From contig QPMI01000197.1 of assembly GCA_004431415.1 (NCBI GenBank), positions 13,341 to 77,340 of the forward strand: 64,000 bases of DNA. Direction: 5' to 3'. Of the stretch, positions 11,812 to 62,920 are shown one piece after another. Within the stretch, counting starts at the first letter, position 1, and each line of letters starts with the position of its first letter. The DNA is from Cyanophora paradoxa CCMP329. Lineage: Eukaryota > Plantae > Glaucophyta. The position numbers and the translations under genes are program-made. The notes beneath the pieces are model-generated. The model saw only the letters and a list, made by a program, of their open reading frames with translations. It made no database searches and was not told the DNA's origin.

Positions 11812-13372
11812 GGATCAGGCGAGCGTGGGGCGACCAGGGGGGCGGGTGGGGGCGAGGGCGCGCTCTGTAGTCCACCGGCAGCTCGACCGTCCTGGGGTCG
11901 ACGAGCCACACTGCCGCCCGAGGGTGAGGCGGGGCGGGCGCTTGCAGGGCCCCCAGGGCCCGCGGCACGCACCGGGGAACTTGGGGATGCGCAGCTGGTG
12001 GTGGGCGAACTGCATCTGCGGGGGGGTCAGGAACATCGTCGGCCCGAACGTGAATCGGGGGGTCGCGTCGCGCCTCGTCGTCGCAGTTGTGGGAGCGGAT
12101 GTACCCCGGTGACAGGAAGCAGACATACGTCCGGCAGCGCTGCATCGCCTCCTGCGCATGCCGCGCGCCCCGCGCGCTCGGCATGCTGGAAGGCGCGAGG
12201 CGGTGGGCGACGCGCACCCCGATCTTGGCCATCCACTTCTGGCCCGCCTTGAGCTCGCGGTCGACCCTGCGCGGGGCGAGGGCGTCAGCGGTGCGGGGGC
12301 GGGGGAGGGGGCGAGGGAGAGGGGTGGCCTTGGAGGGGGGCGAACCATATCTTGAAGCCGGCGGCCTCGAGGGCGTCGCAGTAGCGGAAGACGAGCGTCG
12401 CGTCGACGTGGGCGTAGCTGCAGGCGGCGTGAGCACCGGCAGCGTGCGGCGGGGGCCGGGACAAGCGCCTGACGAAGCAGTCCCAGGCCTTGCCGTCGGC
12501 GGCCGGCTGCAGCGGGGGCGGGTGCTGCGGGACTGCAGCAGGCGCCTGCTGGGCGCGCTGGGCGGCCGGCGGGGAGGGCGCCGCTGGGGGACGGGCTCGC
12601 GTCGGGGAAGGGAAGCACGGGCGGGGTACACTGACCGGGGGCCGGAGGGGCCGGGCGGCGGGCGCAGCGGGGCGCGGGGCGGCGGGCGCAGCGGGGCGCG
12701 CGGCAGGGGCGGCGGGCTGCGGTGGCGGGTGAGTGCGCGGTGGAGGCCGAGGGGTAAGGGGCTGGGAGTGGGGCGCACCGCGGGGGCGGGGAGGGAGCGG
12801 AGGTAGGGCACGACGGCGGCGCACTGGGCTGTACCGTCGTACATGTTGTCATTAACGGCGCGGCGGACAAGCTCGGGCCACGAGTCCACGACGGGGTTGC
12901 CGCTCACGTACAGCTCCTGCAGGGCGGCGAGGCGGCCGATCTCCGGCGGCAGCGCCGTGAGCTGGTTGTCACTCACGAGCAGCTCCTTCAGGGCGGCGAG
13001 GCGGCCGATCTCCGGCGGCAGAGCCGTCAGCTGGTTGTCACCCACGTACAGCGTCTGCAGGTTGGCGAGGCGGCCGATCTCGGGCGGCAGCGCCGTCAGT
13101 CGGTTGTCGTTCACGTTCAGCCACCGCAGGGCGGTGAGGCGGCCGATCTCCGGCGGCAGGTCCGTCAGCCGGTTGTTGGTCAACCACAGCTTTTCCAGGT
13201 TCGTCAGCTTGGCGAGCTCGGCCCCCGGGATGCGCGTGAGCTTGTTATAGCCGAGGTCGAGCTCGCGGATGTTCGCCGGCCCCGCTCGCGCGATCTCCGC
13301 CGCCGGCCACTCCGTCCGCCCCTCCTTCTCCAGGTCCAGCTTCCCCTCCGCCGGGATCCACCCCTTGCCCAT
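11812..13372 (-). pseudogene. LRR-TIR receptor copy A (6 LRRs + TIR type 1), interrupted in its last intron by the CACTG transposon
   Basis: ATG at 13372 (MGKGWIPAEG) followed by LPPEIGRL-type 23-aa LRRs. The spliced TIR reads WDCFVSYAHVD...KIWVDRELKAGQKWMAKIGEAMQRCRTYVCFLSPGYIRSHNCDDEMQFAHH. The last exon seen in copies C and E (MMLASVNW...) is absent from the window. Confidence 0.85.
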
Positions 13373-14465
13373 GCCTGCGGGGCGGTCAGCCGCAGAAGCG
13401 CGCCGCGGGGAGCGCGCCCCCGCCCCGCCCGGCGGGTCCCCAGCCTGCGGGGGGCCGCCCGGCCCGCGCTGAGCCCCTCCCGCAGGGGGCGGTGCACGCG
13501 CGCGCCGGGCTCTGCCTTTACCGGCCGCCCCGCCCCGCCCGAGTCGCGGCTCGGGGGAGCGACGGCGGCCTATGGGAGATTGCACCCCCACGCCCGGGCG
13601 CGCGCTGGGTCCTCCCCCCCTCCCCCCGTTCGTGGGTTGGCGAACGAGGCAGCAAGCGACGCCGGAGCGTGGGGCCCCCCCCACAGGCCCGGCCCCGTCG
13701 ACTCGCCCCGCATCTTACCCGACGTCCGCGCGCCCGCCGCGTCGCTTGGTGGGATCAGTGCGGCCCCTCGCACGCTGCTAGGCGACCCGTGCGGCCCAGA
13801 GCGAATTCGAAGCGATTCGTAGATTCTAGACCGGCGGGATCCGCCCAGCGGCAACTAGCGAGCAACCGGCGTTCTGCGCCCGCCCGGAGGAACGCACCTT
13901 CGACGGATCGCCTTGCAGAAGCAGAGCCGAGCTTTCGGAACCGACGGAGCCCGCCCGGTCAGAAATCCTTGCCGGTCGCGTGCTGCCTGCTGGCTGCTCG
14001 CCCGCTGCCCTGTGGAGCTGCGCGCCGGTACAAGCAAGCAATGAGCGAAGGACAGGAGCGATGCCAGAAACCCGTCGGCTTCGCACCTGCCGCGATGAAT
14101 GCCGATTCACCGAAGCGCTTGGGTACGGCCACGCCGAAGCGCCGGGTACGGTCGCGCCGCAGGCCTCCGCTGCTTTCTTGGCAGGCGGGCGGGTCTGTGA
14201 GCTGCATATACCTATAAACGGCGTTCCGGACCGGTGCACTACTGCCCGTCCACTTCATCGTGCGCCAGCCTTCCAGAGCGATCATATGCATGATCAGGAC
14301 GCAGGCGCAGCTGCAGCTGCAGTCATCAAGATGCAGCTGCGCCTGCGCACCGGCAGCTGCCGCCTGGCAGCCGGGCCCGAGGCCATGGCGGAGCAGAGCG
14401 CCGTCCGCGGTGGCGGGTCGACCCGCTCCTCGTTCAGCAGTACTTCTGTAAATCCAGCAGCACTC
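13373..14465. repeat. Shared ~1-kb upstream (promoter/5'UTR) block of the LRR-TIR family, copy A
   Basis: Near-identical to 36997-38195, 56904-57950 and 62921-64000, with shortened versions at 28665-29190 and 42136-42510. CCCCGCAG immediately precedes GCATG, suggesting a 5'UTR intron acceptor. Confidence 0.9.
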
Positions 14466-15215
14466 GGGCCGCCTGGCTGTCCGCCCGCTCGCTTTGGAGC
14501 GAGATCTTGGCATCATCTTGCCCGGCCTGGGGTACAGCCCGCTGTGCAGGCTCCTTCTGATCACGGCTTCAGCGATGCTTCTCTGCGATTTGGTACGCTC
14601 GCGCTCCTTCTCACTCGGCTCCTGTACCGCTCTGATCGCCGAGGCTCGCAGAGCTCGCTTCGCCTCGCGCGCGGCGCCGGCACATGTACGACCGAACACG
14701 CGCGTGCGAGCGGGGGCCTCGCGCCCGGCGGATCGCACACAATCGCCCTCGGTTGCTCGAGCCCCGTCGACCCGCGCGTGCGCGTATGCTTGCGCGCTAC
14801 GAGCACAGCGGCGCCGGCGCGGCCGCGGGCGGCGCGGCGCGGGAGGAGGGCGCGGTGCGGCCGCGGGCGGCGCGGTGGACGAAGAGCCTCGGGCGCGCTC
14901 CGAGCGGCTCGCTCGGACGAGAATCCTGGAGCACGCCTGCGCACTCTTTCTTCTCCACCCAGGCATCAGGCGCACCGCCTCACAAGCGCACCGTCCTGCG
15001 CCGCCTCCGCCAGTGCGTTCGGGACGTGAGGCCGCCCGCCCCGCGCCCGCCCCGCGCCTTTCCGCCCTGCCTCACCCTAGGCCCGCCCCGCCCCGCCCCG
15101 GGCGGCGGGCCCCGCAGATGTTCCGCGCGCTGGCGCGGCTGCCGGCGCTGCGGTCGCTCTGCGCGGACCGGTCGGGCCTCGGGGAGGAGTCCGCGACGCA
15201 CCTGCAGGAGCTGGT

Positions 15216-21079: not shown

Positions 21080-24000
21080 ATGTACGCGAAGGAGTACTAC
21101 AAGCGGGAGGCCGCCGACGCCCTCCTCGACGTCCGCCGCGAGGTGAGCGGGCGAGGCCCAGCCTCGACGATCCGATCTGGCCCAGCCCAGCCCAGTCTGG
21201 CTAGCCCCCTTCCCAGCTAGCCCAGCCCAGTCTAGCTAGCCCCCTTCCCTAGCTAGCTAGCTAGCTAGCTAGCTAGCTAGCCAGCCCAGACGATCCGATC
21301 TAGCCTCGCCTTGTCTAGCTAGGCCTTTCCAGTCCGGTCCGGTCTAGTCCAGCTGGGCCCCTTGTCTTAGCTTGCCTAGCATAGCATCTGCCTCTCTTTG
21401 AGCCCAAGCTGACTCCTCCCCGCAGTTCTCGGGTGCCGATCTGCTATGGACGGACCACGGGCCGCTTCCGGGCGAGAAGGTCAGACCCTCACCCGCGGGC
21501 CCCTCCCCCCCGCCCCCCTCGCGATCCACTCGCCCCCGGGCCATCTTCCACGCCGTGCCGCTCCTTATGCGCTCACGCCGGACTCAAATCCGCCGGCCTC
21601 CACCCGGGCTACCTACCCACGCCCGGGCGTCCCTCGCGCGCCCCTCACGCGCCCCCGCCCACCAGATCCGGCGGATGCACCGGGAGGACCCTCTCCCGAA
21701 CCGGCCCCCGATCCTCAAGTCCGCCCTCGTCATCCCGGTCCGCCCGTCCGCCCGCCCGCCCCGCGCGCCCCGCCCGCCCGCCCGCCTCGTCCTTCCGCTC
21801 GCCTCTACATTATATGCTTCCATAGCTTCCATTTAAGCTGGGCTCGGGCGCGCGTGCCGCGTCAGCGCACCCTCCCGGCCGGGCCGGGCCCCTTAGGTAG
21901 CCAGCGCGGGTTTCTGAACGTGCGCGCAGGCGCCGGCGTGGCGGACGGCAAACTTCCTGTGGGACCCCACGAGCCGCACCAAGTGGGACAAGGTGCGCCG
22001 GCGGGCGGCGGGTGGGCGGCCCCGCGCGAGCTAGCTCCGACCATCCTTGAATTTGATCCCTAGATTAGATCTCGTAGAAGATCCGATAGCGGAGCGCTCG
22101 TTTCCCAAGCGCCCTCAGAGTTTCCTCAGCTCAGATCCCATACATCTTAGCTCATCACTCGAGAAGACGCTTCCTTTCTAAGCTAACCAGCCAGCTACCT
22201 AACTGACTTCGGTTCCCCTCGCGCAGCTGGCGCTGCGGTGCGGGGTGGTGGACGAGCTGGAGCGGACGACGCGGGTCGACTACGTCGAGGAGACGAACCT
22301 GCAAACTTCCTGTGGGACCCCACGAGCCGCACCAAGTGGGACAAGGTGCGCCGGCGGGCGGCGGGTGGGCGGCCCCGCGCGAGCTAGCTCCGACCATCCT
22401 TGAATTTGATCCCTAGATTAGATCTCGTAGAAGATCCGATAGCGGAGCGCTCGTTTCCCAAGCGCCCTCAGAGTTTCCTCAGCTCAGATCCCATACATCT
22501 TAGCTCATCACTCGAGAAGACGCTTCCTTTCTAAGCTAACCAGCCAGCTACCTAACTGACTTCGGTTCCCCTCGCGCAGCTGGCGCTGCGGTGCGGGGTG
22601 GTGGACGAGCTGGAGCGGACGACGCGGGTCGACTACGTCGAGGAGACGAACCTGCTCCCGGGTCACCTCCCCCGCAACATGGTCCTCGTCGCCACCGTCC
22701 AGGTGGGCGCCAGCACCCGTCTGGCTGCCGGGCTCTGGGGCGAGAGAGCGGGCGGGCGCCGGTCCCGCTGACACGGCTCCCTCTCTCTGCAGCGCGACCT
22801 GCACGCGCGCATGTTCGTGATCGCCTACCGATCCGTCATCCACAAGAAGGGTGCTCCGCTTAACCCTGCTTTACCCTCCTTCTCTTTTTCCGCGGAGCTG
22901 AATCGTGGCGCGCAGTCAAAGTCGAGGGGCAGTTCATCCGGGCGCACGTCTTCAAGGGGGTGCGCCGTGCGGCGCGAGGGCGAGAGGGGGCTTGGCGCGG
23001 CACGGCGCGGCGCGGCGCGGCGGGGCGGGGAGCGAGAGGGGGCGGGGATACGCCGAGCGGCGGGGCGGGGCGGGACTCGGCTATCGATATCTCCCTTCCG
23101 GCGCAACGCAGCTCCGCTATCTCGCGTCTCGACTCTGGAGCGCTAGAAAGAGGGCCTGACGGGGCGGGGCGCGGGGCGGCAGGGCTTCATCGTGCGGGAG
23201 GTCGACGAGCGCAGCAGCGAGCTGACGTACGTCATCCAGATGGACGTCAAGGTAGCCTACCCCCCTCCTTTTCGCCCCCCCCCCCGTGACGTCACGCCCA
23301 CCGTGACGTCACGCCCGGTCAGGGCGTCCTATCGCGCGTCACGGCGGAACACTACTTCGCGCGACGCATGCTGGCGCCGCAGCAGGCAGGCTTTCCCGTA
23401 CCCCTCTTGCTTTCCTCCCCGCCCTTCCTCAGCGCCGCCCCCCTCCCCGCTTTGCAGATCGGGTACGCCCTTAGGATCGAGTACCTGTCCAACTGCGGGA
23501 AGGTGTGTGTACCCCGGCCGGGCTCCGCGGGCCCCGTACCCCGCCTCGCGGGCCGCGCTGACGCTCCTGGCAGTGGATCAAGGGCGGGCTCTTCCCCCCC
23601 CGCTCCCTCGTCTCCGAGTCGCGGCACATCCAGGGGGCCCTGAAGAAGGTCCGAGCACGCTCTTGTTCGTTCCCGCGCGTTTCCTCGCTCGTGATCTGAC
23701 GGGTACGCGGCAAGATCCGGGGGATGAAATCGCTGGTGTCGTTCCTTCCGGGGTCCTCGTCGGGGCAGCCGTCGCCCACTGGCTCCGAGGAGGACGAGCC
23801 GGGGGACCCGCGCCCCGCCCCGCCGCACGAGGGCGCAGAGGGACCCGGGGGGGAGGCCCCGCGGGGGGGTACGGAATCCGAGCCCCGCGAGGCGGCGGCG
23901 CCCCGCGAGCCGCAGGCGGACCCCGAGAGGGCGCGCGTGCCCTCCCCGGGGCCGGACGCCGACGCGCCGTCGCCGCAGCCGTTGCCGGGCCGCCCGAGTC

Positions 24001-26521
24001 GGCGCAGCCGTCGAGGAAAGCGGCGCGGCTCGCCGCGCCGCAGCCGCTCGACGTTGCAGGCGACCGTTCCCCCTCCCCTTCCCCTCCTCCCGTCGCCGGT
24101 CGCGGCGGCGGCCGGGGCCGCGCGGGCGGCCGCAGCGAAGTCGCCGCAGGGGCAGGGGCCGGCGGGCGTGCAGAGGGGCCAGCGGTCCCCGGCCCTGGGA
24201 AGGCGGCGCCCTCGATCGGGAGCGCTGCCTCCCTGGAGGCCGCCCCCGCCCCGGACGCGGCGGGGCTCCTGGCGACCCTCAAGCCCCGCCCGCGCTGCCG
24301 CCCGCCGCCGCCGCCGGCGCCGCCGCGCCCCACCCGTCAACAACGGCGGCGGCGGCGTCGGCTTCTCCCCCCGCCGCCGCCTCCGTCCCGGGCTCTCGCC
24401 CCGACTCCTTCAGCTGGCAGCAGCCGGACCAGCGGCGGCCCTCGACGAGCGATGGCCTCGCCGGCTCGAGCCTCCTCCCGCCGGGCGCTGTCATCGCCGG
24501 CATCAGGTCCGCCCGTCCTCCGCCCGCCCGCCCGCTGCGCTGCGCCGCACAGAAGATGCTTGCTGGCCGCTCTGTCTACCCTTACATCTCTGCCCACCTG
24601 TCCTTGACCCGCCCGCGTGCAGGCGGGCGTCGACGGCGGCGAGCCTGCCGCGCACCTACTCCGGCACCTCCCTCGCATCCACCGTCCTCCTCAACCCGCC
24701 CAAGTGAGTGAGACTCCACTGAGCCTCCTCTAACAGACCCCTTCCTCTCTCTACCCCCTCGAATCTTCTTCCGCCCCTCACGCCCCTCGCAGACGGCGCC
24801 GGCGGGCCCGCCGAAGCGGCCGAGCGGCCTGAGCGCCCTCCAGGTGCGCCCTGCAGGCGGCCGTCCCAAGAGGCTTGAATCTGGCCGGACCTGGACTTGA
24901 CGCTAGAGCCTAAAGAGCCTAGAGAACGCCCGCCGAGGGGCCCCGGGCCCGGCACCCCGCCGCCCGCCGCGCCCTCCTCCTCATCGCGGGGGCAGGCGCT
25001 GCTGGACGCGAGCCCCGTGGTCTTCGACGCGGAGGAGCTCGCCCGCGAGGAGCGCCGCCTCCGCCGCCGCCGCCGGTGCGAGCCGCCCGGCCCCGCACCG
25101 GCCCCGGCGCCAGGTCGTCGCTAGCTGTAGCCGTCTAGAGCTACTGCACCGTGAATGCTAGAGAACGAGGCCTCTTCTGACGGTGGCGCGCAGGCTGGCG
25201 CGGCAGGCGGCGGCGGAGGCGCGGGCGGACGCGGAGCGCGTGGCGACGCCGGCGGCCCTGCAGCAGCTGCAGCTGCAGCACTCAGCGACGGCCCCGGGGG
25301 CGCTTGGCCTGGCGCCGGGCCTCGCGGGGGCGGTGGCGCAGCTCGCCGCGCGGCGCATGTCGCGGCGCATGTCCCTCATGAAGCTCGCCGAGCTGGCCGC
25401 GCAGGGCGCCGAGGTCTCCGCCTTTCTGAGGTGCCGCCATCCTCCCTTCGGCGCGTCCGCAGAGGCTCACTTCGTTCGCCGCGGCGCAGCTCGGACGGCT
25501 CGCCGCTGCGGCAGGCGGTGGGCGGCGGCGGCGGGGCCGGCGCGTGGAGCGAGGAGAGCAGCTCGGGGAGCAGCGCGGAGGAGGCGGCCGCCAACTCGGC
25601 CCAGGAAGAGGACGAGGCCGAAGAGGAGAGGATGCGCGAGGCGCGCCCGCCGCTGTTTGCTGTTGTTTGATTCCGTTTGCTGTCCGCTGATGGTGGTCCC
25701 GGGTACAGGAGGACCCGCTGAACCTCACGGGCTGGGCGAACGCTCGCCAGGCCAAGAAGGCGCGGCACCGGGGGGCGGGGGCGGGGCCCGCGGCCCCCGG
25801 GCAGGAGGGCAGGGCGGCCGCCGCGGCTGCGGCGAAGGGGCCGCTCAAGTCGGGCGGCGTGGGGGCCCGCCTCTTCCGGAAGTACATGGCGGTACCCCTC
25901 CCGTCCATGCGGCTCCTCAGGGAGCGCGGCTCCCGCTCCCCCTCCCCGGACTCCCGCTCGGCTTCTCCCCCCCGGGCCCAGACCGCCGCCGGCCGCGTCC
26001 GCGTCTCTACCCCCCTCGACCCCGTCCACCAGGCCGTGCGCGTACCCCCATTCCCCCTCCGTCTCGCCCCCGGCCCGCTCCCCTTGACCGGGGTACGGCA
26101 GGCTCTGGACTTTGCGAACGCGCGGGCGGAGGCGCGGAGGCTGCGGCACGAGGCCGGCATGAGCGCGTCCGCGGGGAGCCTCTCCTTCGGCGATCTACCC
26201 CCTCCGCCTGGCGACCTCCCGCCGGGCCTCAGATACGTACCCCCGCCGCGGAACAGGCGGGCGTCCACGGCGGACGGGGTACGCCGCTCCTCCGCGTCGG
26301 GCGGGGGCCGCCGGAGGAGCAGCATACTGGCGCCCGCCGGATCCGAACCGCCGCCCGCCGGCGCCGGCGCCGGGCTGGGGCCTCAGGGGCGGGGCCAGGG
26401 GCACCTCTCGGTCACGCAGTCGGCCCCCTCGCTCGGGGGCCTGGGCCTGCGCTCCGGCGCCCGCCCCGCGACGGTCCCCGCGGAGCCCGCCCGCCCGCAC
26501 CTGCCCCCGGGGGCGGCGTGA
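21080..26521 (+). CDS. START-domain (lipid-binding) protein with long low-complexity C-terminus, multi-exon
   Basis: Exons read MYAKEYYKREAADALLDVRRE / PILKSALVIP / FLWDPTSRTKWDK / VVDELERTTRVDYV...PRNMVLV / MFVIAYRSVIHKK / GFIVREVDERSSELTYVIQMDVK / G, a START-like pattern. Linkage of the C-terminal exons is less certain. Confidence 0.7.
21948..22653. repeat. Perfect 353-bp tandem duplication within the START gene
   Basis: GCAAACTTCCTGTGGGACCCC occurs at 21948 and 22301. The duplicated unit is exon end + intron + next exon start. Confidence 0.95.
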
Positions 26522-27089
26522 CTCTCTCTAGTACACGAGTGATCCCCGGGGGCGACGTGACTCTAGCGCGATTTCTTGCTCTTCTGTACACTATGGTTTC
26601 GTCCTTATTCTAGTTAGCGTTGTGTCTTATATATTCCGGCATCCCACTGAGCCTGCCCGGCGGCCAAACGTTAACCCGAGCCCCGATCGCGAGCCCGAGC
26701 TACCCTCGCAGTCGATCTCGCCGAAAAACATCGTACAGACAGACTCATGATCAAAGACAGACTCTTAGGCAGCTAGGACAGAACCGCTAGACAAGAATCA
26801 CAATTTGGAAGGACAAATTACGTCCAGCCGCCTGAACAATTCAACCGAATTCGAAGGGAAATCTAAGACTTTGGCGGATGCGGAGCGCCGGGCCTCGCGG
26901 AGGAGGGCTGAAGCACCCGCGGCCTCCTCGAGGAGGGAGGAAGGGGGGAGGGAAGGGCCGGGGAGGGAGGCGGGCCGGAGCCGGGCCCCGCCCGGCGGCG
27001 AGGGGAAGCGAGCGGGCGAGGGCCTGGGGCCGACGGCTTAAGCTTGGCTCGCGGGGGGCGAAGCGGAGCCGGGCGGCCGGGCGGGGCCC

Positions 27090-28664
27090 TCAGCGGCGGG
27101 CGCCCTCCTCGCAGGCCTCGAGCAGGAGCCGGAGGCTGACCCGCCGGAAGGCCGCCTCCGCGCAGCACGGGATCGCCACGCGGGCAAAGACGAGCCGCAG
27201 GTCGGACGGGATCTCCCCCGCTGAGGGGCGATCGAATTCGGTTGGCTGGCGGGGTGGTTCTGGGGCGGGGGCGCACGGGCGGGGAAGCGGCAGGACTTCT
27301 CGTCGTGGAGGAGGACGATGTTCTTCCCCGCCCGCGCCGCGTGCCGCACCTCGCCCAGCACGTACTGGCTCGCCAGCACGTCTGCGCAGCGCAGGGTCCG
27401 AGAAGATCAGACGCCGCCGGGCACGAGAACAGCCGCGCGGACCCTGAGAGATGATGAGGACGACGCTCGCGGAGGCGTCGATGATGTTCTCGAGCCTGCG
27501 GGGCGGGGGGCCGGCCCGGGTGAGAGCGCGGCGAGCACTCCAACTCGAGAGGCGCGCACTGGTGGAGCTCGAGGCGGGAGTCGTCGACGTCGAGGAAGAC
27601 GCGGAGGCCGGGGCGGGCCTGCTCGAGCTGGAGCTTGAGGGCGAGGGCGAGGTGGCCGGCCGAGGACTGCTTGTGCGAGAGGAAGACGTCGTACTGCGTC
27701 GCTGCGGCGGGGGGTGAGGCTTGGGCGGGGCCGGCTGCTCCGGGGTGGTGCACGGACCGGGGGCCGGGGCGGCGGGGCGCACCGCGGGGGCGGAGGCGGG
27801 GAGGGAGCGGAGGGATCCGAGGCGTTCAGGCGTTCAGAGGGGGTTGCCGCTCACGTCCAGCGTCTGCAGACGGGAGAGGCGGCCGATCTCCGGCGGCAGC
27901 GCCGCCAGCTGATTTTTCTCCACGCTCAGCTTCTGCAGGTTGGAGAGGCGGCAGATCTCCGGCGGCAGCGCCGTCAGCTGGTTGTTGCTCACGTACAGCT
28001 CCTGCAGGTTGGAGAGGCGGCCGATCTCGGGCGGCAGCGCCGTCAGCTGGTTGTTGCTCACGTACAGCTCCTGCAGGATGGAGAGGCAGCCGATCTCCGG
28101 CGGCAGCGCCGTCAGCTTGTTGTCGCTCACGTTCAGCCACCTCAGGTCGGCGAGGCGGCCGATCTCCGGCGGCAGCGCCATGAGCTGGTTGCCGCTCACG
28201 CCCAGCACCTGCAGGGCGGCGAGGCGGCCGATCTCGGGCGGCAGCGCCGTAAGCTGGTTGCCGCTCACGCCCAGCGTCTGCAGGTTGGAGAGGCGGCCGA
28301 TCTCGGGCGGCAGCGCCGTCAGCTGGTTGTCGTTCACGTACAGCGTCTGCAGGGCGGCGAGGCGGCCGATCTCCGACGGAAGCGTCGTCAGCTGGTTGCT
28401 CTGCACGTTCAGCCACCTCAAGGCCGCGAGGCGGCCGATCTCCGGCGGCAGGTCCGTCAGCCGGTTGTTGGTCAACCACAGCCACTCCAGGTTCGTCAGC
28501 TTCGCGAGCTCGGCCCCCGGGATGCGCGTGAGCTTGTTCTCGCCAAGCTCGAGCCAGCGGATATTCTCGGGCCCCGCCGCCGCGATCTCCGCCGCCGGCC
28601 ACTCCTCCCGGTCCTTCCCCCCCAGGTCCAGCTTCCCCTCCGCCGGGATCCACTCCTTGCCCAT
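27090..28664 (-). CDS. LRR-TIR receptor copy B (11 LRRs + TIR type 2) with one in-frame TGA between LRR and TIR
   Basis: ATG at 28664 (MGKEWIPAEG). The LRR ORF stops at 27834-27836 but continues in frame as TPERLGSLRSLPASAPA. The spliced TIR reads QYDVFLSHKQSSAGHLALALKLQLEQARPGLRVFLDVDD...LENIIDASASVVLIISQDVLASQYVLGEVRHAARAGKNIVLLHDE...EEGARR*. Confidence 0.8.
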
Positions 28665-29191
28665 GCCTGCGGGGCGGTCAGCGGCAGAAGCGCGCCGCGG
28701 GGAGCGCGCCCCTGCCCCGCCCGGCGGGTCCCCAGCCTGCGGGGGGCCGCCCGACAGCGCCATAGCACGCTTATAGGCGCCCCGCGCGGCCCAGAGCGAA
28801 GCGATTCGAATTCGTTGGTTCTAGACCGGGATCCCCCCAGCGGCAACTAGCAAGCAATCCAGGCCATGCGCCCGCCCTGAGGAGCGCACCTTCGACGGAT
28901 CGCCTTCCCGCAGAAGAGCCGAGCTTTCGGAACCGACGGAGCCCGCCCGGTCAGAGATTCCTTGCCGGTCGCGCGCTGTCTGCTGGCTGCTCGCCCGCTG
29001 CTCTGTGCAGGGAGCTGTGAGCGAACGAGAGGCGAGCGATGCAAGAAACCCGTCGGCTTCGCACCTGCCGCGATAAACAACGCCTACACCGCCGTAACAC
29101 CGAGGCCCTCTGCGGCGTCGGTACGTACACGCCGTTCTCGGCCGTCCGAGGCCGTCCGAGGCCCGGAGGCCGAAGCGCCGGGGTACGGGGT

Positions 29192-32714: not shown

Positions 32715-32748
<34 letters not shown>

Positions 32749-42135: not shown

Positions 42136-42934
42136 GCCTGCGGGACGGTCAGCGGCAGAAGCGCGCCTCGGGGAGCGCGCCCCTGCCCCGCCCGGCGGGT
42201 CCCCAGCCTGCAGGGGGCCACCCGAAAGCGCCATAGCACGCTTCTAGGCGTAGATTCTAGACCGGGACCCGCCTAGCGGCAACTAACAGCAATCCAGCCT
42301 GGCAGGCCATGCGCCCGCCCGGAGGAGCGCACCTTCGACGGATCGCCTTCCCGGTTCCCGCACGCCCGCTACTCTGTGCAGGGAGCTGCGCGCCGGTACA
42401 AGCGAGCAGTGAGCGAACGACAGGCGAGCGATGCCAGAAACCCGTCAGCTTCGATTCGCACCTGCCGCCCGCAGCCGCCGAAGAGCCGGGGTACGGTCGC
42501 GCCGCCGCTAACTTTAGTAACCCGCTGCTGCAGCTGCGCTACTTCGAATTCCATGCATGCGCATATGGCCGGGCGCTTGCGGGCGCGGGTCTGTCAGACC
42601 CGCACTGCATGTACTCCAGAGCATGTACATGTACATGTGCCAGCTTTCAACATGTGCCAGCTTTTAAACATGTGCAGCTGCAGTGCAGGTGACTCAGCGC
42701 TTTCAACATGTACATGTGCCAGCTTTTAAACATGTGCAGCTGCAGTGCAGGTGACTCAGCGCTAGCGCTAGCCTCGAGCCTCGGAGCTCATGATCATGAT
42801 TAAGGCCTCATGATCAGGGCCTGGCAAAGACTCTCAGAGTCTTCGCGGGTCCTAGGCCCCATGGCCAGGCCCGTCCTAAATGCCACCCGGCATCTCGAAC
42901 CCTCCTTTCTTCCTCCCTTCGAATTCGCGGCTCC

Positions 42935-45900
42935 CTACTTCCGCTTGGCGCCTGCGGGGGGCGTCTTGCGGGTCACCTCCGAGCGGCTCGCCGGCCGCGC
43001 CGGCCCCGCGGCCTCCTTCGGCGGCTCGGGCTCCGCAGGCTTGGCCGCCTCCGCCGGGGGCGCCGGGGGCGGCGGCGTCTCCGGCTGCGCCCGGACCGGA
43101 GGGGACGCGCGCGGTGAGCCGCAAATAAACCTAGCTGGATACAAGGGCCTCTAGCGCAGGCGCAAGCGGACCTTGGGCGGGGGCGGGGCGGCTCGAAGGT
43201 GCCGATGTACTCGTCGCCGTTGGCGTACAGCATGCGGCCCTGCGCCCTCGAGCTCAGGGGGGGGGGGAAGAGAGGGGGGAGGGGGGGGGGGGGCGTGGAC
43301 CCGGGGGACCGAGTTCTAAGGGGAGGAGGGAGGAGGCGGGGGAGGGGAAGGCGCCGGGCGTCTAGAAGAGGCGCCGAGCGGCGCGGGGCGAGGGGGGCGG
43401 CGCCCCCACTTGAAGTTGGATTGATATAGATCTTAGTAGGGGCTTAGTCGTTTTTCTTTAATATTGAATCTTAGCTAGATCTTAGTAGATCTAGATTCTC
43501 TGATTCTTGGGCTTATGGTTCTTAATAGGCTTAAGATTAGGCCGCACCCGCCCGCACTTGAAGTCGCCGGCCCACTCGCCCTCGTACACGTCCCCGCTCC
43601 TTTGGAGGAGGCGCCTCAGATGAGGGCGGGGGAGAGGAGGGGGTGGGGGGTACGGACATGTAGCGCATGGTGCCGGTGCCGTGCCGCTTGTTGTCGAGCC
43701 AGTCCCCTGCGCGAGGATGAGGGGGAGGGGGGGGGAAGAAAGGGGGGGTACGCGGCCCGCACCCTCGTAGGTCTCCCAGACCGTCTCCTCCTCTGCCGCC
43801 GGTTCGGCGGGTGCGGGCGGAGCAGCAGGAACCCCCTCCGCCCCCTCCGCTGCCGCCGCTGCCGCCGGCGCCGGCGGCTGAGCGGCCTCCGAGGGGGCGG
43901 TACCCGGCCGCGAGGCGGGCGGGGAGGGCGCCGGCGAGGGCGAGGGGCCGGAGGGGGCGGAGGGCTGAGGCTGAGGCTGAGCGGGCGCCGAAGATACCGC
44001 TGAGGCCGGGGCCGGGGCCGGGGCCGGGGCCGGGGCGGCGCGCGGGGGCTTCCTCGGGTACCGCGCCGCGCCGCGGCCGGTGCGGACGCCGGACTTGAAA
44101 TCTGAGCGACGGCCCCCGCGATCAGCGTCCATGCGACTCTTGAACTATTAATCTATTAGAAGCTTATGCCGCCAGGAGATTCTTAAGAAGACGCTCGAGA
44201 GCGCGACAGGCGAGGCCCCCCACCCCCCACTCCCCCATAAAGGCCGAACGCCCTCGCGCTCCCGCCGCGCGCCGCGCCGCGCCGCGCCGCGCCGCGCCGC
44301 GCACCGCCGTCGTAGACGACGCCGTTGCGGTACTCCGCGTGGCCCCCGGGGCCCTGCGCCCCGCCCCGCCCCGTGAGACAGGCTCGGGTCGGCCACGCTG
44401 GGCGGATGGGCGGGCGGGGCGGTGCCTCGAGTTCGTTTAATCTAGCGGGGGCGGGGCTTGGGGGGCGGGGGGGGGGAGGGGGAGGGTGGGGGGGGGGGGT
44501 GCGGGGCGGGGCTGGGGGGGGGAGCCCGGGGGGGGGGGGGGGGGGCGAAACATAGCTATGGTACTATCGTAGTCATAGTTCTACAATAATCATCAAGGTA
44601 AAAAGCGGAGCCGGTGCGGGGGCGGGCAGGGCTTCACTATAAATCGGTTAAGCTTTAGGTCCGTTGAGCTTTTAGAGTTTAATCTAGCGGGAGCGGGGCG
44701 GGGCGGGGGCGGGGGCGCACGTCGCGGTCGCCCATGACAAAGGGGCCGACGTAGAGGACCTCCCCGTCCGGGCCCCCCGCAGGCCCGAACCTGCGCGAGA
44801 GAGGGGATGAGACCGGATCGGATCGGATCAGCCCTGGCTAGCTAGCTCCTGGCGTCGGCTTCGGGTCCAGTGGGCCGTGGGATCCGAAGGGCCGACCCGG
44901 AGGCGGGGAAGGCGGCTTAGAGGCCCCAAGCATGTAAGCCCCGAGTGCTTCTAACCAAGCCGTCTCAGAGTACCCCGACGAACAGCTGCCACGAGAGGAG
45001 ATCACGGACTGGAGATCGTATGAGCCCTCGCAGGCCCTAAGCCCCCGCTATCTATGAGCCCCGGACCTATACGAGCCTCCAGCGCTTATAACCGAGCCCC
45101 AAGAACGCAGCGCGGTGGCCCAACGCCCCTCTATCTATCTATCTGCCATCCCTAAGCCCCAGGCCCCTTGCTTTTTATTCAAGCCCCAAGAAAGCGGCGC
45201 GGACCGGAGGGTGCCGTGCCCGTGCCGGGCGATGGAGTGGCCGTGGGCGCCCGTGAAGGGCCCCTCGTACACGTCCCCGCTCGGGTGCTCCTCCACCCCT
45301 GCGAACAAAGTTCAGGGGGGGGGGGGGGGGGGGGGGTGGGGGGGGGGGGAGGGGTACCGAAGGGGAGGCCGTCCTCGAGCCACTCGCCCGAGAAGCGGCT
45401 GCCCGTCTCCGCGACGGTGAGCGCGCCCTGCTCGGATCAGATCAGATCGGATCGGATCGGATCTGATCAAATCAGATTAGATCGGAGCAGAGGGCTCACC
45501 TGACCCTGCCGGACGCCCTGGTTCCAGTCCCCCTCGTACTTGTCCCCGTTCGTGTACAGCATAACGCCCCGCCCTGCGCTATTTTAAGGGGGGGGGGAAG
45601 AGACGAGGGGTACGGGCTCGGGCTCGCACCGTGCCGCACGTTGCGGCGCCAGTCGCCCGTGTACACGCGGCCGTCCCAGTACGTCATCGTACCCCCCGCC
45701 CCGTCCATCGCGCCCTCCCTCCACGGGCCCTGCACCCCAGGACGGTTCAGGGTGGGGGGGGGGGTGAAGACGAAGGGGGGGTACGGGTACCTGGTAGACG
45801 TCGCCGTTGGAGAACTTCATGAGACCCGAGGGACCGGTCATCTGACCGTCCACCCACGGCCCCTCGTACACCTGTACCCCCCGAGAAACAATTCATAAGC

Positions 45901-47118
45901 CTCTCAAAGGAGTGGGGGGAAGGAGTTAAGGAGGGGTACGCACGTCTCCGCCCTGGAAGCGGCACGTGCCGCTCCCGTGCCTCAAATCGTTCCGGAAGTC
46001 GCCCTCGAACGTATCCCCTACCCCCCGCCTCGCCCGTCACGAACCGCGCCGGGAGAAGAGGGGGGAGGGAGCGGGCGGGGGGTACCGTTGGGAAGGTGCT
46101 GGAAGCCCTTGCCCTCGCGGCGCCCCTCTACCCAGCGCCCCTGGTACCGCTCCCCGGTCGCGTACAGCATCATGCCTGAGCGGGGATTACGTCAGATCGG
46201 ATCGGATCAGATCAGATCAGATCAGATCAGATCAGGTGAGATCTGAGCCGCACCGATGCCGTTCCTGTGCTCCCCGAGGAAGTACCCCTCGTACCGGTCC
46301 CCGTTCGCGTACCAGAACGTGCCTGCGGGGCCTAAGCTGAGAAAACGGATAGAAGGAGTAGGAGTAGAAGGAGTAGGCTCTTAGAAGAAGCCCCCCCGCC
46401 CGCCCGCACCTTTGCCCTGCCGCGCGTCGTTGACCCAGACGCCGACGAAGCGGTCGCCGTTAACGTAGGAGTACTCGCCGGGCCCGTGCTTCAGGTTGTT
46501 CACGAAGGCGCCCTTGAAGCGGTCCCCGCCGCTGTACGTGATCTGGCCCGATCCCTACAGCCTCGGAGGTCAGCAGGGGCGGAGAGGCGGAGCCAGGCGG
46601 GGTTCGCTCGCTCGCTCGCCTCGCGCCGGTCGTCGACCCACTCTCCCTCGTACAAGTCGCCGTTCTCCCACTGGTACGTGCCGTACCGGTGCCGCACGTC
46701 CTTCGTCCAGTTCCTGCGGGCCGCGGGCGCGGACGCGGACGTGGACGCGGCGGTGGCTCAGCGGTGCGGCGGCGGTGCGGGAAGCGGGAGAGGGGGCGGG
46801 AGCGCGGCGCAGCGGCTCGGGCTCACCCCTCGTACTTCGCGCCGTCGTGGTAGAGCAGCGTTCCTGTGCCCGCGCGGATTCCATCGACCTCGGGAAGCAC
46901 GGGAAGTTCGACAGGCGGCGGAGGCGGCGTGGGCTCCTCCGGCGGCTGCGCGGCGGTCCCAAATCGTCAGAGGCTGTGCCCGGGGAGCGCTCGCGGCTTC
47001 GCGGGCGCACCGGTGGCGTCGGCGACTTGAGCGGCTCCGGCGGCGGCGGCGGAGGCTCAGCAGCGGCTGCCGCGGCTGCCTTCGACTCTCCCTTCTTCCC
47101 TGCTGGCTTCGGCGGCAT
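42935..47118 (-). CDS. MORN-repeat protein (many repeats; radial-spoke-head/PIP5K-like MORN family), multi-exon
   Basis: Starts MPPKPAGKKGESK. Repeated YxGxW/FxxxxRHGxG motifs: NGDLYEGEWVDDRRE, GDRFKGAFVNNLKHGPG, GDKYEGDWNQGVRQGQ, VYTGDWRRNVRHG. Confidence 0.88.
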
Positions 47119-55035: not shown

Positions 55036-56903
55036 TCACTGTACGCTGCAGGACTTCTCTTCCTCCGCGGGAGCGGCGGCGCTGGGGCCGGGGCGGGGGC
55101 CGGGAAGGGAGCTCCCGTGCCGCAGGAAGTCGCGCAGGCCGGCGACGAGCTCGCCGGCCGCCGCGTCCGCTGCGGCTGTCCCCTGCCCCCGCTGCATCGT
55201 CCAGTTCACCGACGCCAGCATCATCTGATGGCGAACGTGAGCTGAAGTCGGGAAAACGCAGGGTTCGGGCAGCGACGTGGGCGCCGGCGCGCCCTGTAGT
55301 CGACTGGTAGCTCGACCGACTTGGGGTCCACGAGCCACACTGCCGCCCGAGAATGAGGCCGGGCGAAGGGTGCGGGGCGGGCCGGCAGGCAGGCACCGGG
55401 GAACTTGGGGATGCGCAGCTGGTGATGAGCGAACTGCATCTGCTGGGGGATCAGGCACGGAAGCCTAGCCCTGGATCGGGGCGGGGGGCTGCGGCGCGCC
55501 TCGTCGTCGCAGTTGTTGGAGCGGATGTACGCTGGCGAGAGAAAGCAGACGTACGTCCGGCAGCGCTGCATCGCCTCCTGCGCATGCCGCGCGCCCCGCG
55601 CGCTCGGCATGCCGGAAGGCGCGAGGCGGTGGGCGACGCGCACCCCGATCTTGGCCATCCACTTCTGGCCCGCCTTGAGCTCGCGGTCGACCCTGCGCGG
55701 GGCAAGGGCGTCAGCGGAGCGGGGGCGGGGGAGGGGGCGAGGGAGAGGGGTGGCCTTGGAGGGGGGCGAACCATATTTTGAAGCCTGCGGCTTCGAGAGC
55801 GTCGCAGTAGCGGAAGACGAGCGCCGCGTCGACGTGGGCGTAGCTGCAGGCGGCGTGAGCACCGGCAGCGTGCGGTGGAGGCCGGGACAAACACCTCACG
55901 AAGCAGTCCCAGGCCTTGCCGTCGGCGGCCGGCTGCAGCGGGGGCGGGTGCTGCGGGACTGCAGCAGGCGCCTGCTGGGGGCGCTGGGCGGCCGGCGGGG
56001 AGGGCGCCGCTGCGGGGCGGGCTCGCGTCGGGGGAAGGGAAGCACGAGCGGGGGTACACTGACCGGGGGCCGGAGGGGCGCGTGCGGCGGGGGCGGCGGG
56101 CTGCGGTGGCGGGTGAGTGCGCGGTGGAAGCGAGGGGCGGGGCCGGGTGCCGGGGCGGCGGGGCGCACCGCGGGGGCGGGGGCGGGGAGGGAGCGGAGGT
56201 AGGGCACGACGGCGGCGAGCTGGGCTTCACCATCATACTCGTTCTCGTTGACGGCGCGGCGGACGGCGGGCCACGAGTCCACGACTGGGTTGCCATCCAC
56301 GTGCAGGTACTTCAGGGCGGCGAGGCGGCCGATCTCCGGCGGCAGCGCCGTCAGCTGGTTCTTGCTCACGTACAGCTCCTTCAGGGCGGCGAGGCGGCCG
56401 ATCTCCGGAGGCAGCGCCGTCAGCTGGTTGCCGCTCACGTCCAGCGTCCGCAGAGCGGAGAGGCGGCCGATCTCCGGCGGCAGCGCCGTCAGCTGGTTGT
56501 CACTCACGAGCAGCTCCTTCAGGGCGGCGAGGCGGCCGATCTCCGGCGGCAGCGCCGTCACCTGGTTGTCGCGCACGAACAGCTGCTGCAGGTTGGAGAG
56601 GCGGCCGATCTCCGGCGGCAGCGCTGTCAGCCGGTTGCTGCTCACGCCCAGCGCCTGCAGGGCGGCGAGGCGGCCGATCTCCGGAGGCAGCGCCGTCAGC
56701 TGGTTGTCGCTCAAGTACAGCTTTTCCAGGTTCGTCAGCTTGGCGAGCTCGGCCCCCGGGATGCGCGTGAGCTTGTTCCCGTCGAGGTCGAGCACGCGGA
56801 TGTTCGCCGGCCCCGCCGCCGCGATCTCCTTCGCCGGCCACTCCGTCCGCCCCTCCTCCTCCAGGTCCAGCTTCCCCTCCGCCGGGCTCCACCCCTTGCC
56901 CAT
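55036..56903 (-). CDS. LRR-TIR receptor copy E (8 LRRs + TIR type 1), apparently intact
   Basis: ATG at 56903 (MGKGWSPAEG). In-frame splicing leads to WDCFVSYAHVD...YVCFLSPAYIRSNNCDDEMQFA...MMLASVNW...SCSVQ*. Confidence 0.88.
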
Positions 56904-57950
56904 GCCTGCGGGGCGGTCAGCGGCAGAAGCGCGCCGCGGGGAGCGCGCCCCCGCCCCGCCCGGCGGGTCCCCAGCCTGCGGGGGGCCGCCCGGCCCGCGC
57001 TGAGCCCCTCCCGCAGGGGGCGGTGCACGCGCGCGCCGGGCTCTGCCTTTACCGGCCGCCCCGCCCCGCCCGAGTCGCGGCTCGGGGGAGCGACGGCGGC
57101 CTATGGGAGATTGCACCCCCACGCCCGGGCGCGCGCTGGGTCCTCCCCCCCTCCCCCCGTTCGTGGGTTGGCGAACGAGGCAGCAAGCGACGCCGGAGCG
57201 TGGGGCCCCCCCCACAGACCCGGCACCAACAACTCGCCCCGCATCTTAGCCAACGTCCGCGCGCCCGCCGCGTCGCTTGGTGGGATCAGTGCGACCCCTC
57301 GCACGCTGCTAGGCGACCCGTGCGGCCCAGAGCGAATTCGAAGCGATTCGTAGATTCTAGACCGGCGGGGTCCGCCCAGCGGCAACTAGCGAGCAACCGG
57401 GGTTCTGCGCCCGCCCGGAGGAGCGCACCTTCGACGGATCGCCTTGCAGAAGCAGAGCCGAGCTTTCGGAACCGACGGAGCCCGCCCGGTCAGAAATCCT
57501 CGCCGGTCGCGCGCTGCCTGCTGGCTGCTCGCCCGCTACTCTGTGCAGGGAGCCGCGCGCCGGTACAAGCAAGCAGTGAGCGAACGACAGGCGAGCGATG
57601 CCATAAACCCGTCGGCTTCGCACCTGCCGCGATGAATGCCGATTCACCGAAGCGCGGGGGTACGACCACGCCCTGGCACGCCGAAGCGCCGGGGTACGGT
57701 CGCGCCGCCGGGTCGCGGGCCTCTGCTGCTTTCATGGCGGGCGGGCGGGTCTGTGAGCTGCATATACCTATAAACGGCGTCCCGGACCGGTGCACTACTG
57801 CCTGTCCACTTCAACATGCGCCAGCCTTAATTGCAGAGCGATCATGATCAGGACGCAGGCGCAGCTCTGCAGCCATCAAGACGCAGCTGAGCAGGCGCAC
57901 CGGCAGCTGCAGCCTGGCAGCCGGGCCCGAGGCCATGGCGGAGCACAGCG
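56904..57950. repeat. Shared upstream block, copy E
   Basis: Near-identical to the blocks upstream of A, C and F. Confidence 0.9.
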
Positions 57951-57997: not shown

Positions 57998-58079
57998 CAC
58001 TAGTAAAAAGGGGGTCGCCGGATCCAGCCTGATATAAATCAGGCTGAAACAGGCTCCGGCGACCCCCCTTCTACTAGTG
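57998..58079. mobile_element. 82-bp non-autonomous mini-CACTA (MITE-like) with 3-bp TSD
   Basis: CTC|CACTAGTAAAAAGGGGGTCGCCGGA...TCCGGCGACCCCCCTTCTACTAGTG|CTC, with ~25-bp TIRs and an internal hairpin CAGCCTGAT-ATAA-ATCAGGCTG. Confidence 0.92.
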
Positions 58080-60943: not shown

Positions 60944-62920
60944 CTACGCGAGCGGCGGCGGGAGCGACTCGTACGGCTGCGGATGTTGTCAGCGGTGGGC
61001 GAGGGGGGTGGGGAAGGGGTGGAGGGCGGACGGGGACGGCGGCGACGGCGGCGTCGATGAGGGCGCAGAGTTTCGCGAAAGACGCCTGCTGGTACATGTT
61101 ACTGAAGAAGACCGCTGAGGGCAGCCCCGGGACGCGGCGTCAGCGGCGCGCGGGGCGGGCGCCGCGGCTGCGCCGAGCGCGGCGGGGCGGACCGTTGTGG
61201 CTCGAGAAGGCGGCCATGTCGGCGGGGAGGCCGTCGCAGGCGGGGAACTTCTCGTTTGGGTCGTCCACGAAGGGGATGATGGCCTTGCGCAGGTACAGGC
61301 TCATGACGACCTCCTTTCGGACCCTGCGCCGCGCCCCGCGGGGTGGCTTGGCTTGCGGGGCCGCCGGGGGGGGCGGACGGCACCAGTCGGTGGAGAGGGC
61401 GGCCGAGGGGGCCTTGTCTTCGAAGCAGCGGTCCAGGGTCCCCGGCGTGAGCACGAAGACTGCGCCCGGGCGTCAGGAGGAAGGCGGGCGAGGCGGGGGC
61501 CGCCGGCGGGACGCGCCGTCGCAGCAGGAGCGGCGGAGGCTCTCGAGGATTTTCGGGCCGAAATTGCCGCCCTGGAGGCTCTGCAGGTCGTAGAAGACCT
61601 TGTAGCTGCCGCAGTTTCAGGCGTGGAAGGGCGCGAGGCTGGCGCGTGTGGCCGCACCCGATCTTGTCGAGTGCCTCGCGCACGAGCGCCGCGAGGAGGT
61701 TCTTCTTGTCCTTGTCCGACCGCCGGTACGTGATGCTGCGCGACCTCAGGGGCGAGCGAAAGGAGCGCGGAGGAGGCAAGGCGGCGCACAAGGCGTGGAA
61801 CTCGTAGCCGGGGGGCAGCGGCGGGGCGCGCCGGGCGGCGGCGCTCTGCGGGCGGGCCCGGGGCGCGTTCGGCGCCGCGCTGGCGAGGCCGTGCTCCCTC
61901 GCGAGATCGGAAATCTACAGCTGCGTCAGGTAGGTCCGAGGGAGGGGCGGGTGGCGGGGAGGGAGGTGTGCCTTTAGGAGCAGGTTGCGGCGGACGAGGC
62001 CCGACTCGACGCCGAGCTCCTCGCGCAGATCGCCGTCGGTGAGGGTGAGGAGGACCTGCCCGTCGACGGCGCAGCCCTCGAAGGCCGGGGCCAGCCTGCC
62101 GAGGTCGAGGGACCGGAGCCACTCGCAGACGTCGGCCACGCGCATGCCCCGCGGGTCCTTCGCCGCCGCCGCGGGGGCGGGCACTGCCGGCGCGGGCGCC
62201 GCGGCGGGCGAGGCCGAAGGGGCGGCGGCCGCAGGGAGGCTGCGCGCTGTCGTCGGGAGGCGGGAAGGCGCGGGCGGGGCGTGCGCGGACCGGGGGTTGA
62301 AGGGCCGGGGCGGCGGAGGGGCGCGGGCGGGGGCGGGGCGGGGCGGGCTGCAGCGCGGGGTGAGAGGCGGGGCGCGGGGGCGGGGCGGCGGGGCGCACCG
62401 CGGGGGCGGGGGCGGGGAGGGAGCGGAGGTAGGGCACGACGGCGGCGCACTGGGCTTTACCGTCGCTGCGGTTCTCGTTGACGGCGCGGCGGACGGGCTC
62501 GGGCCACGATTCTAGCTGCTGTACCCACAGCTGCTGCAGGGCGGCAAGGCGGCCGATCTCCGGCGGCAGCGCCGTCAGCTGGTTGTCACCCACGTACAGT
62601 GTCTGCAGGGCGGCGAGGCGGCCGATCTCCGGCGGCAGCGCTGTCAGCTGGTTAAAGCTCACGTCCAGCACCTGCAGGGCGGAGAGGCGGCCGATCTCCG
62701 GCGGAAGCGCCGTCAGCTGGTTGCTCTGCAACCACAGCTTCTCCAGGTTCGTCAGCTTGGCGAGCTCGGCCCCCGGGATGCGCGTGAGCCTGTTCCCGTC
62801 GAGGCGGAGCCAGCGGATGTTCTCCGGCCCCGCCGCCGCAATCTCCGCCGCCGGCCACTCCTCCCGCCCCTCCCACCCCAGGTCCAGCTTCCCCTCCGCC
62901 GGGATCCACCCCCCGCCCAT
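60944..62920 (-). CDS. LRR-SAM-TIR receptor copy F (4 full + 1 partial LRR, SAM, SARM1-like TIR)
   Basis: The SAM reads MRVADVCEWLRSLDLGRLAPAFEGCAVDGQVLLTLTDGDLREELGV. The spliced TIR reads HAFITYRRSD..LLAALVREALDKIGYKVFYDLQSLQGGNFGPKILESLRRSCCDVFVLTPGTLDRCFED..DWVRKEVVMSLYLRKAIIPFVD..LPADMAAFSSHNAVFFSNMYQQASFAKL. The linker exon (~62291-62347) needs a 1-2 nt indel in its C-runs to join frames. Confidence 0.82.

Follow-up and report, generated by a model that had tools for sequence, protein, structure and literature searches.

Plant resistance (R) gene loci of the NLR and LRR-RLP classes, such as Cf-4/9, RPP5, and flax L/M, are marked by hypervariable xxLxLxx positions in their leucine-rich repeats (LRRs), by exchange between paralogs, and by birth-and-death evolution. 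The variable lymphocyte receptors (VLRs) of lampreys and hagfish start from incomplete germline genes, which somatic assembly completes from the hundreds of partial cassettes that flank them. SHOC2, Rsu1, and the LIC proteins of Leptospira are single-copy scaffolds or secreted bacterial proteins, and we know of no description of them as hypervariable, TIR-fused clusters. In the brown alga Ectocarpus, positive selection has been reported on the repeats of the LRR-ROCO genes, and shuffling has been proposed as the source of the repertoire; each 24-residue LRR is encoded by its own 72-nt exon, and the LRR domains of paralogs cannot be aligned (PMC3341825; PMC11378527). Here we describe a cluster of six LRR genes, A to F, in the glaucophyte Cyanophora paradoxa CCMP329. 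The cluster lies in a stretch of 64,000 nucleotides (contig QPMI01000197.1 of assembly GCA_004431415.1, positions 13,341 to 77,340 of the forward strand), hereafter the window, and all coordinates are counted from its first letter.

The genome paper of C. paradoxa makes no mention of LRR or TIR, no paper in the searchable literature links Cyanophora with LRR-TIR genes, and the predicted LRR-TIR/LRR-SAM-TIR family is undescribed. We document the anatomy of the family, the pattern of its variable sites, an excess of replacements at these sites, mosaic tracts shared between copies, and the positional collinearity of the repeat units. The cluster has probably evolved in the germline by birth-and-death with short-tract conversion, unequal crossover, and diversifying selection, in the manner of plant R-gene clusters. 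This mechanism is of a textbook kind and involves no new principle. An immune-type role in ligand sensing is suggested for the encoded proteins.

Cluster layout and anatomy of the LRR exon

The six paralogs are arranged in tandem on one strand within 50 kb. The repeat unit has a constant backbone of 33 nt, for which 35 matches with at most three mismatches were found in the window against 0 expected, all of them on the minus strand and all inside the six arrays. Periods of 69 bp reported by Tandem Repeats Finder (TRF) coincide with the same arrays. In-frame translation gives 6, 11, 6, 11, 8, and 5 LRRs for A to F, counting LRR1 and the capping repeat, and reproduces the counts of a first-pass annotation made from the sequence alone (6, 11, 6, 11, 8, and about 5). 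The full units of 23 residues (69 nt) number 35 over the six copies.

In every copy the whole LRR array is one open exon, which starts with a 34-residue N-cap (beginning MGxGW) and continues with a 24-residue LRR1, a run of 23-residue units, and a capping repeat. The ATG of this exon lies at 13372 (A), 28664 (B), 36996 (C), 42135 (D), 56903 (E), and 62920 (F). A word search identified the public gene models tig00000841_g4721, g4726, g4730, g4736, and g4738 as copies A, B, C, E, and F, respectively, and the Pfam families LRR_14, LRR_8, and LRR_4 match the LRR exons with E values from 1e-21 to 1e-55. The exons and their full units are:

12779-13372, minus strand: LRR exon of copy A (model tig00000841_g4721; Pfam LRR_8/LRR_4/LRR_14)
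12923-13198, minus strand: full units A2-A5 of copy A, followed by the capping repeat A6 at 12854-12922
27837-28664, minus strand: LRR exon of copy B, 11 LRRs (model g4726), with full units B2-B10 at 27870-28490
36430-36996, minus strand: LRR exon of copy C, 6 LRRs (model g4730), with C2-C5 at 36547-36822 and a type-II C-cap
41308-42135, minus strand: LRR exon of copy D, 11 LRRs, with full units D2-D10 at 41341-41961
56169-56903, minus strand: LRR exon of copy E, 8 LRRs (model g4736), with E2-E7 at 56316-56729
62453-62920, minus strand: LRR exon of copy F, about 5 LRRs (model g4738), with F2-F4 at 62540-62746

The last repeat of copy F is truncated by an in-frame deletion of three codons, in which its Asn is lost. 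Copy D is probably a recent pseudogene, because its codon 4 reads TAG (42124-42126; GAG in B). In copies B and D the last GNPL is immediately followed by an in-frame TGA, and B10 and D10 are the only units that end in the rare codon CGT (27870-27875 and 41341-41346). The public model of B uses the GT of this codon as the donor of exon 1 and splices out the sequence from about 27873. Under this model the last repeat and the TGA fall in an intron, and the C-cap may have disappeared from the B/D subfamily.

Splice-like motifs also occur inside the arrays. Many units have a donor-like GTGAGC or GTGAGT at codons 6-7, and an acceptor-like CTGCAG is seen at codons 1-2. Between such sites in array A (12917-12976), model g4721 takes out a 60-nt 'intron' and yields an out-of-register repeat; the cut may be an artifact of the gene finder or real splicing within the array.

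Hypervariable positions and predicted structure

The exon encodes an LRR domain of the 23-residue SHOC2/LIC type. Over the 35 units, codons 2, 3, 5, 7, and 8 show an entropy of 1.75-2.77 bits with 4-8 residues each, codons 22 and 23 show 1.26-1.65 bits, and every other codon is at or below 0.91 bits. This per-codon profile bears out the first-pass claim of a nearly invariant backbone with widely varying xxLxVxxN positions. Differences between units fall nearly all in first and second codon positions, and third positions barely vary. Several codons are fixed by position, with CTG at Leu1, 4, 11, and 14, CTC at Leu21, GCG at Ala13, and GCC at Ala22/23, and the position-specific choice is retained in nearly all units that have the given residue. 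Because codon choice is position-specific, the synonymous uniformity reflects shared descent or homogenization, and not just a preference for codons ending in G or C.

A structure of exon E was predicted with AlphaFold (AF2) from an alignment of 19 sequences, at a mean predicted local distance difference test (pLDDT) score of 96.2. The model has a three-residue strand in each repeat, at unit positions 3-5 and recurring every 23 residues, and a short helix at positions 16-20. Its fold is closest to those of SHOC2, Rsu1, and the Leptospira LIC LRR proteins (Foldseek TM 0.75-0.84), and sequence matches in the Protein Data Bank (PDB) are 4u09 and 7sd0. Standard LRR geometry has positions 3 and 5 projecting from the concave sheet, with positions 2, 7, and 8 on its flanks. 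The five most variable positions are predicted to bracket or sit in the β-strand of the concave face, and the high-confidence model of exon E accordingly places them where the first-pass annotation had expected them.

Replacement rate at the variable codons

Rates were obtained by counting methods, both pairwise and by parsimony. Coding blocks in fixed register were used instead of a six-way MAFFT alignment, which was too gappy across arrays of unequal length. All DNA comparisons concern the six copies A to F; nine further family members on other contigs were compared as proteins.

Between collinear units of different genes, the proportion of replacement differences (pN) at the variable codons is 0.30-0.49, and 0.11 for B-D. 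In the backbone, pN is 0.01-0.04 and the proportion of silent differences (pS) is 0.04-0.14. The upstream non-coding flanks of A, C, E, and F, 1.1-1.2 kb in length, differ by 5-7% (93-95% identity), and divergence at the variable codons is 4.9-8.5 times that of the flank (Fisher p 1e-9 to 1e-23). Over all units, first and second positions of variable codons have a diversity of 0.577, compared to 0.042 for the third positions of the interleaved invariant codons. Codon parsimony on the maximum-likelihood (ML) unit tree assigns 79.8 replacement and 8.2 silent changes to the five variable codons, and the replacement rate (dN) at these codons is 3.9 times the silent rate (dS) of all codons (P=9e-12); the ratio of the two rates (omega) is 0.40 in the backbone. 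The comparison of dN/dS that had been suggested in the first pass therefore places the exposed codons above the backbone. Replacement at exposed residues is far above the neutral proxies, with purifying selection elsewhere, and selection is the likely cause of the excess. Omega values of about 0.9-1.5 from the closest unit pairs were set aside as biased, the pairs having been picked for similarity.

The array of D is ∼98% identical to that of B apart from units 6-7. Differences between B and D in units 1 to 10 number 2, 2, 1, 0, 2, 8, 11, 4, 3, and 1 (dispersion p=0.0002), and are concentrated in one patch:

28077-28214, minus strand: B6-B7 patch, which with D6-D7 (41548-41685) accounts for 19 of 34 differences between B and D over units 1-10

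Outside the patch, the exons of B and D differ by about 2%, compared to 7.4% in the region downstream.

The N-cap (codons 1-34; 13271-13372 in A) has about equal replacement and silent divergence in most pairs (0.148 and 0.145 for A-B), and for this reason appears much less constrained than the repeat backbone.

Sequence exchange between copies

Identical variable cassettes had been reported in otherwise different copies, and all five were located: LKELLVSDN in A5 and E5, LQTLYVGDN in A4 and F4, LEKLWLQSN in C2 and F2, IRELDLGYN in A1 and C1, and LRWLNVQSN in B3, D3, and D7. With B-D pairs and LRR1 left out, three identical nine-residue cassettes are shared between genes, against 0.12 in column shuffles (P=0.0008). 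The cassettes are identical by descent, because they have rare synonymous codons in common as well (AGT in A5/E5, GGT in A4/F4). The shared units carry private differences, three per unit in A4/F4, A5/E5, and C2/F2.

Recombination was assessed on a block comprising the N-cap and units 1-4 of the six genes in fixed register. The block contains 94 variable sites, 54 of them parsimony-informative, and many of their splits are incompatible. Applied to the exon, the pairwise homoplasy index (PHI) test was positive for windows of 50 nt (p=0.0005) and 100 nt (p=0.002); the non-variable sites alone gave p=0.39 and the variable sites alone p=0.16, with power lost in both subsets. For copies A, C, E, and F, the non-coding flank upstream gave a PHI p of 0.016. 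The 24 informative sites of the flank (16 separating AC from EF, 6 separating AE from CF, and 2 separating AF from CE) have their split types in blocks. A Sawyer-type test, which assigns pairwise P values to runs of identity at consecutive polymorphic sites, identified the following tracts:

13136-13190, minus strand: A-B tract (coding sequence (CDS) 183-237, unit 2), with 13 consecutive polymorphic sites identical; P=0.0008
13212-13285, minus strand: A-C tract (CDS 88-161, end of the N-cap and LRR1); P=0.002
36782-36834, minus strand: C-F tract (CDS 163-215, end of LRR1 and the unit-2 cassette); P=0.004
12960-13021, minus strand: A-E tract (CDS 352-413, unit-4 backbone to unit-5 cassette); P=0.013

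The tracts of identity are 50-75 nt long, cover about one variable cassette each, and end in or beside the constant backbone, within which their breakpoints are not further resolvable. Supported clades of the unit tree are (A4,F4), (A5,E5), (C2,F2), and (A2,B2,D2), and since these conflict no single gene tree fits. The closest relative of copy A changes along the exon: it is C for LRR1, B/D for unit 2, F for unit 4, and E for unit 5, and the flank of A slightly favors C. The first-pass suggestion that exchange proceeds through the constant backbone agrees with the positive PHI test and Sawyer-type runs and with the position of the tract ends. Its comparison of unit trees with gene trees gave incongruent clades, and the units never group by gene.

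Unit order and unit number

The gene label requires 24 changes on the unit tree and 21.7 after shuffling, and the units show no clustering by gene. Ordinal position requires 15 changes vs 24.7 after shuffling, with none of the 500 shuffles as low, and the clustering by position is retained when D is left out (13 vs 17.8 changes; P=0.002). Every cassette shared across genes is collinear when counted from the N- or C-terminal end, both in the window and in the nine other family proteins. The only well-supported case out of register is D7, which groups with B3/D3 (support 98/97). B5, B6, D5, and D6 form one clade, and B8 and B9 are nearly identical. The splitting of the arrays into 69-nt units, their clustering, and the mapping of their order, all suggested in the first pass, gave a positional and not a gene-wise grouping. 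Its notion of interchangeable units does not hold in the sense of a free shuffling of order, as the units group by ordinal position and the shared cassettes are collinear.

Lengths of the arrays differ by exact multiples of 69 nt, and all arrays are in frame, so the unequal crossover envisaged in the first pass finds support in these whole-unit differences. The protein tig00000532_g1893 corresponds to the B/D array minus units 4-7, with junction units that are both of the LRWLNV type, and tig00000532_g1888 corresponds to A plus one unit. Copy E corresponds to A plus two units, and its units E5, E6, and E7 resemble the A5 type, the B5/C5/D5 type, and the A5 type, respectively. These changes in unit number fit in-register unequal exchange, and we infer the direction of each event from such comparisons.

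Proposed mode of evolution and alternative explanations

Under germline birth-and-death evolution, copies would duplicate and some would die, as D with its nonsense codon 4 appears to have done. Out-of-register recombination in the nearly identical backbone would lengthen or shorten arrays by whole 69-nt units, and short in-register tracts of conversion or crossover, about one cassette in length, would carry variable cassettes between paralogs. Diversifying selection would retain or favor replacements at 5-7 concave-face residues per repeat, and the structural backbone would be under purifying selection.

Several points weigh against this reading. A Bonferroni correction over 15 pairs leaves A-B and A-C below 0.05, and C-F at 0.06. 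With the silent changes of the variable codons as the reference, omega is 1.8 (binomial P=0.055). Silent sites may be constrained by a strong codon bias at third positions (GC3), and the flanks may have been homogenized by conversion, so that the age of the copies is understated. The short, recombining units under test were also the input of the unit tree, and only six copies entered the analysis as DNA, the other nine members having been compared as proteins. Between B and D, replacement at variable codons is not above silent change outside the two-unit patch, and because the B-D change clusters in the patch, recent diversification looks patch-wise and not like steady point substitution. The diversifying selection proposed in the first pass is accordingly upheld in part: the excess of replacement over flank and backbone stands, but the local omega is borderline and B-D is not elevated outside the patch.

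Some of these observations would also be expected from a conversion mosaic without positive selection, in which the variable positions are unconstrained, old differences are spread among copies, and flanks and backbone are homogenized. The conversion-like tracts are real, as seen from PHI and the Sawyer-type runs, the B-D change is a patch and not a set of scattered substitutions, with omega <1 outside it, and the borderline omega against local silent changes leans the same way. However, variable and invariant codons alternate every 3-6 nt, and for that reason no conversion tract could homogenize codons 1, 4, 6, and 9 silently (0.042) yet spare codons 2, 3, 5, 7, and 8 (0.577). Neither can neutral sites outpace a 1-kb non-coding flank 5-8 fold. 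At minimum, selection is needed to hold diversity against homogenization, and we consider a purely neutral mosaic unlikely.

An error of assembly or polishing, with mis-assigned reads or polishing across paralogs producing chimeric arrays, false cassettes, and wrong repeat counts, is a markedly less plausible source of the pattern. The contig name (tig...) suggests a long-read assembler, the locus contains many near-identical 69-nt units, and Logan contigs of independent runs break up within the arrays. For the region 36400-42200 (copies C and D), the Logan contigs of four public runs are hundreds of short multi-paralog pieces; their joints lie only at GC-rich low-complexity tracts, and none is usable within the arrays. 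In two runs that are presumably RNA, the summed depth over the arrays is high but not assignable to these copies. On the other hand, all arrays are in frame with the repeat register intact, and the shared tracts carry the private differences given above. Cross-polishing homogenizes, and would not make a divergent patch such as B6-7/D6-7. Incongruent splits are also present in unique non-coding flank, and differences of the same kind are seen in protein models of another contig.

Least credible is a programmed or somatic diversification in which the 33-nt backbone serves as recombination substrate and new cassette combinations arise in individual cells: the nucleotide sequence of the backbone is nearly identical over the 35 units, tracts end at or beside it, and a precedent has been published, as a hypothesis, for brown algae (PMC3341825), but in the germline assembly all six genes have complete open exons, the paralogs preserve positional unit order, and no observation requires a somatic step. 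A backbone scan found no free-standing or partial donor cassettes in the 64 kb. It is similarly hard to believe that the backbone is a dedicated recombination substrate, with elevated and possibly regulated mitotic reshuffling or conversion of cassettes in Cyanophora. If this were true, a clonal population would hold a varied LRR-TIR repertoire, as a unicellular analog of VLR-type diversification.

Upstream exons, tails, and surrounding duplications

Each LRR exon is preceded by a mini-exon:

13896-13958, minus strand: mini-exon of copy A, with donor GAAG/GTGCG, about 520 nt upstream of the LRR exon
28888-28950, minus strand: mini-exon of copy B
37517-37580, minus strand: mini-exon of copy C
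42331-42390, minus strand: mini-exon of copy D
57427-57490, minus strand: mini-exon of copy E
63467-63530, minus strand: mini-exon of copy F

Lying about 520 nt upstream, the mini-exon and its GT donor are conserved in 6/6 copies, reading ...RRFRKLGS..RRSVEG, of which D retains the last part only, and all six copies have an AG acceptor 2 nt before the ATG. Since the mini-exon contains an in-frame stop, MGxGW is the likely start of translation, and the mini-exon is probably 5′ untranslated region, judging from the reading frames. A 24-bp tandem repeat lies near the mini-exon in A, C, and F.

The gene models place 4-9 small exons after the LRR exon, leading to three kinds of tail:

11700-12716, minus strand: TIR type 1 tail of copy A, from the gene model
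35345-36329, minus strand: TIR type 1 tail of copy C, from the gene model
55039-56100, minus strand: TIR type 1 tail of copy E, from the gene model
27093-27699, minus strand: TIR type 2 tail of copy B, from the gene model; copy D has the same type
60947-62346, minus strand: SAM and third TIR tail of copy F (model g4738; SAM_2; Pfam list of P0058)

SAM_2 matches the downstream exon of F with a Pfam E value of 1e-10. Searched exon by exon, Pfam gave a sub-threshold TIR_2 match on one stretch (E=5e-4; 21 bits vs a cut-off of 28), and the TIR families PF13676 and PF01582 are among the Pfam domains precomputed for the spliced public models. NB-ARC and NACHT are absent from the precomputed Pfam lists of the gene models, which contain LRR, TIR, and SAM, and RING on other contigs. 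The model sequences pass from the LRRs straight into TIR or SAM-TIR.

Two types of C-cap, PVVDSWP... and PLTAMPE..., are found (12780-12860, 36430-36480, 56169-56250; P0047, P0061, P0094, P0117). Cap I occurs with TIR type 1 in A and E and with SAM-TIR in F, cap II with TIR type 1 in C, and a truncated cap II with TIR type 2 in B and D; on other contigs, cap I is found with TIR type 2 and both caps with RING tails. Cap types and tails are thus combined independently. The six copies share 86-100% identity over the end of the exon (...YLRSLPAPAPA) and the beginning of intron 1, and this stretch may be a junction for tail swaps. Past the end of the exon, A ceases to be closest to E and becomes closest to C.

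Duplications are also seen between the genes, where 15440-17869 matches 24303-26525 and 32238-35101 matches 43387-45963 (81-94% identity), and a 353-bp tandem duplication at 21948-22655 is perfect (100%). Given these duplicated blocks between the LRR genes and the tandem duplication, the whole cluster looks like a set of nested segmental duplications. The G+C content of the window is 43-51% at 1-12000 and 65-80% beyond. A 360-bp tandem repeat occupies 10201-11161 (2.7 copies, 98% identical), and a G-rich tract of 89 nt lies at 9662-9750.

Comparison with known systems

The cluster brings the hallmarks of an immune-receptor arms race to a glaucophyte, a deep-branching single-celled relative of plants: the genes are clustered, the binding face is hypervariable, cassettes are exchanged, the number of repeats changes, and pseudogenes arise. 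It does so in what the gene models give as a minimal LRR-TIR layout without a nucleotide-binding domain. With six genes in 50 kb and the sensor in one exon, it offers a compact system for asking which ligands a unicellular alga senses, and whether direct coupling of LRR and TIR predates NLRs.

With SHOC2, Rsu1, and the Leptospira LIC proteins, the Cyanophora genes share the 23-residue class and the LPxEIGxL motif on the helix side. As in lamprey and hagfish VLRs, the concave face is diversified, and in both systems short homologies in the LRR units guide copy-choice or conversion. Unlike VLRs, the Cyanophora germline genes are complete and lack flanking cassettes; the first-pass comparison with lampreys therefore fails on the defining features, as the germline genes are complete and no cassettes stand free. 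The Ectocarpus ROCO genes are likewise an algal LRR family built on a repetitive unit. The Cyanophora genes differ from them in having one exon, a 69-nt unit, collinear arrays, and no ROC-COR, and the parallel drawn in the first pass breaks down on the rule of one LRR per exon, all LRRs here being in a single exon.

Plant R genes differ in that the Cyanophora genes have no NB-ARC and no layout of transmembrane segment and ectodomain. The Cyanophora LRRs are N-terminal, of the cytosolic type, and 23 residues long, they lead directly, in the gene models, into TIR or SAM-TIR, and the host is a unicellular glaucophyte. Like the plant clusters, this locus combines tandem paralogs, exposed x residues at which replacement exceeds silent change, mosaics, changes in LRR number through unequal exchange, and pseudogenes.

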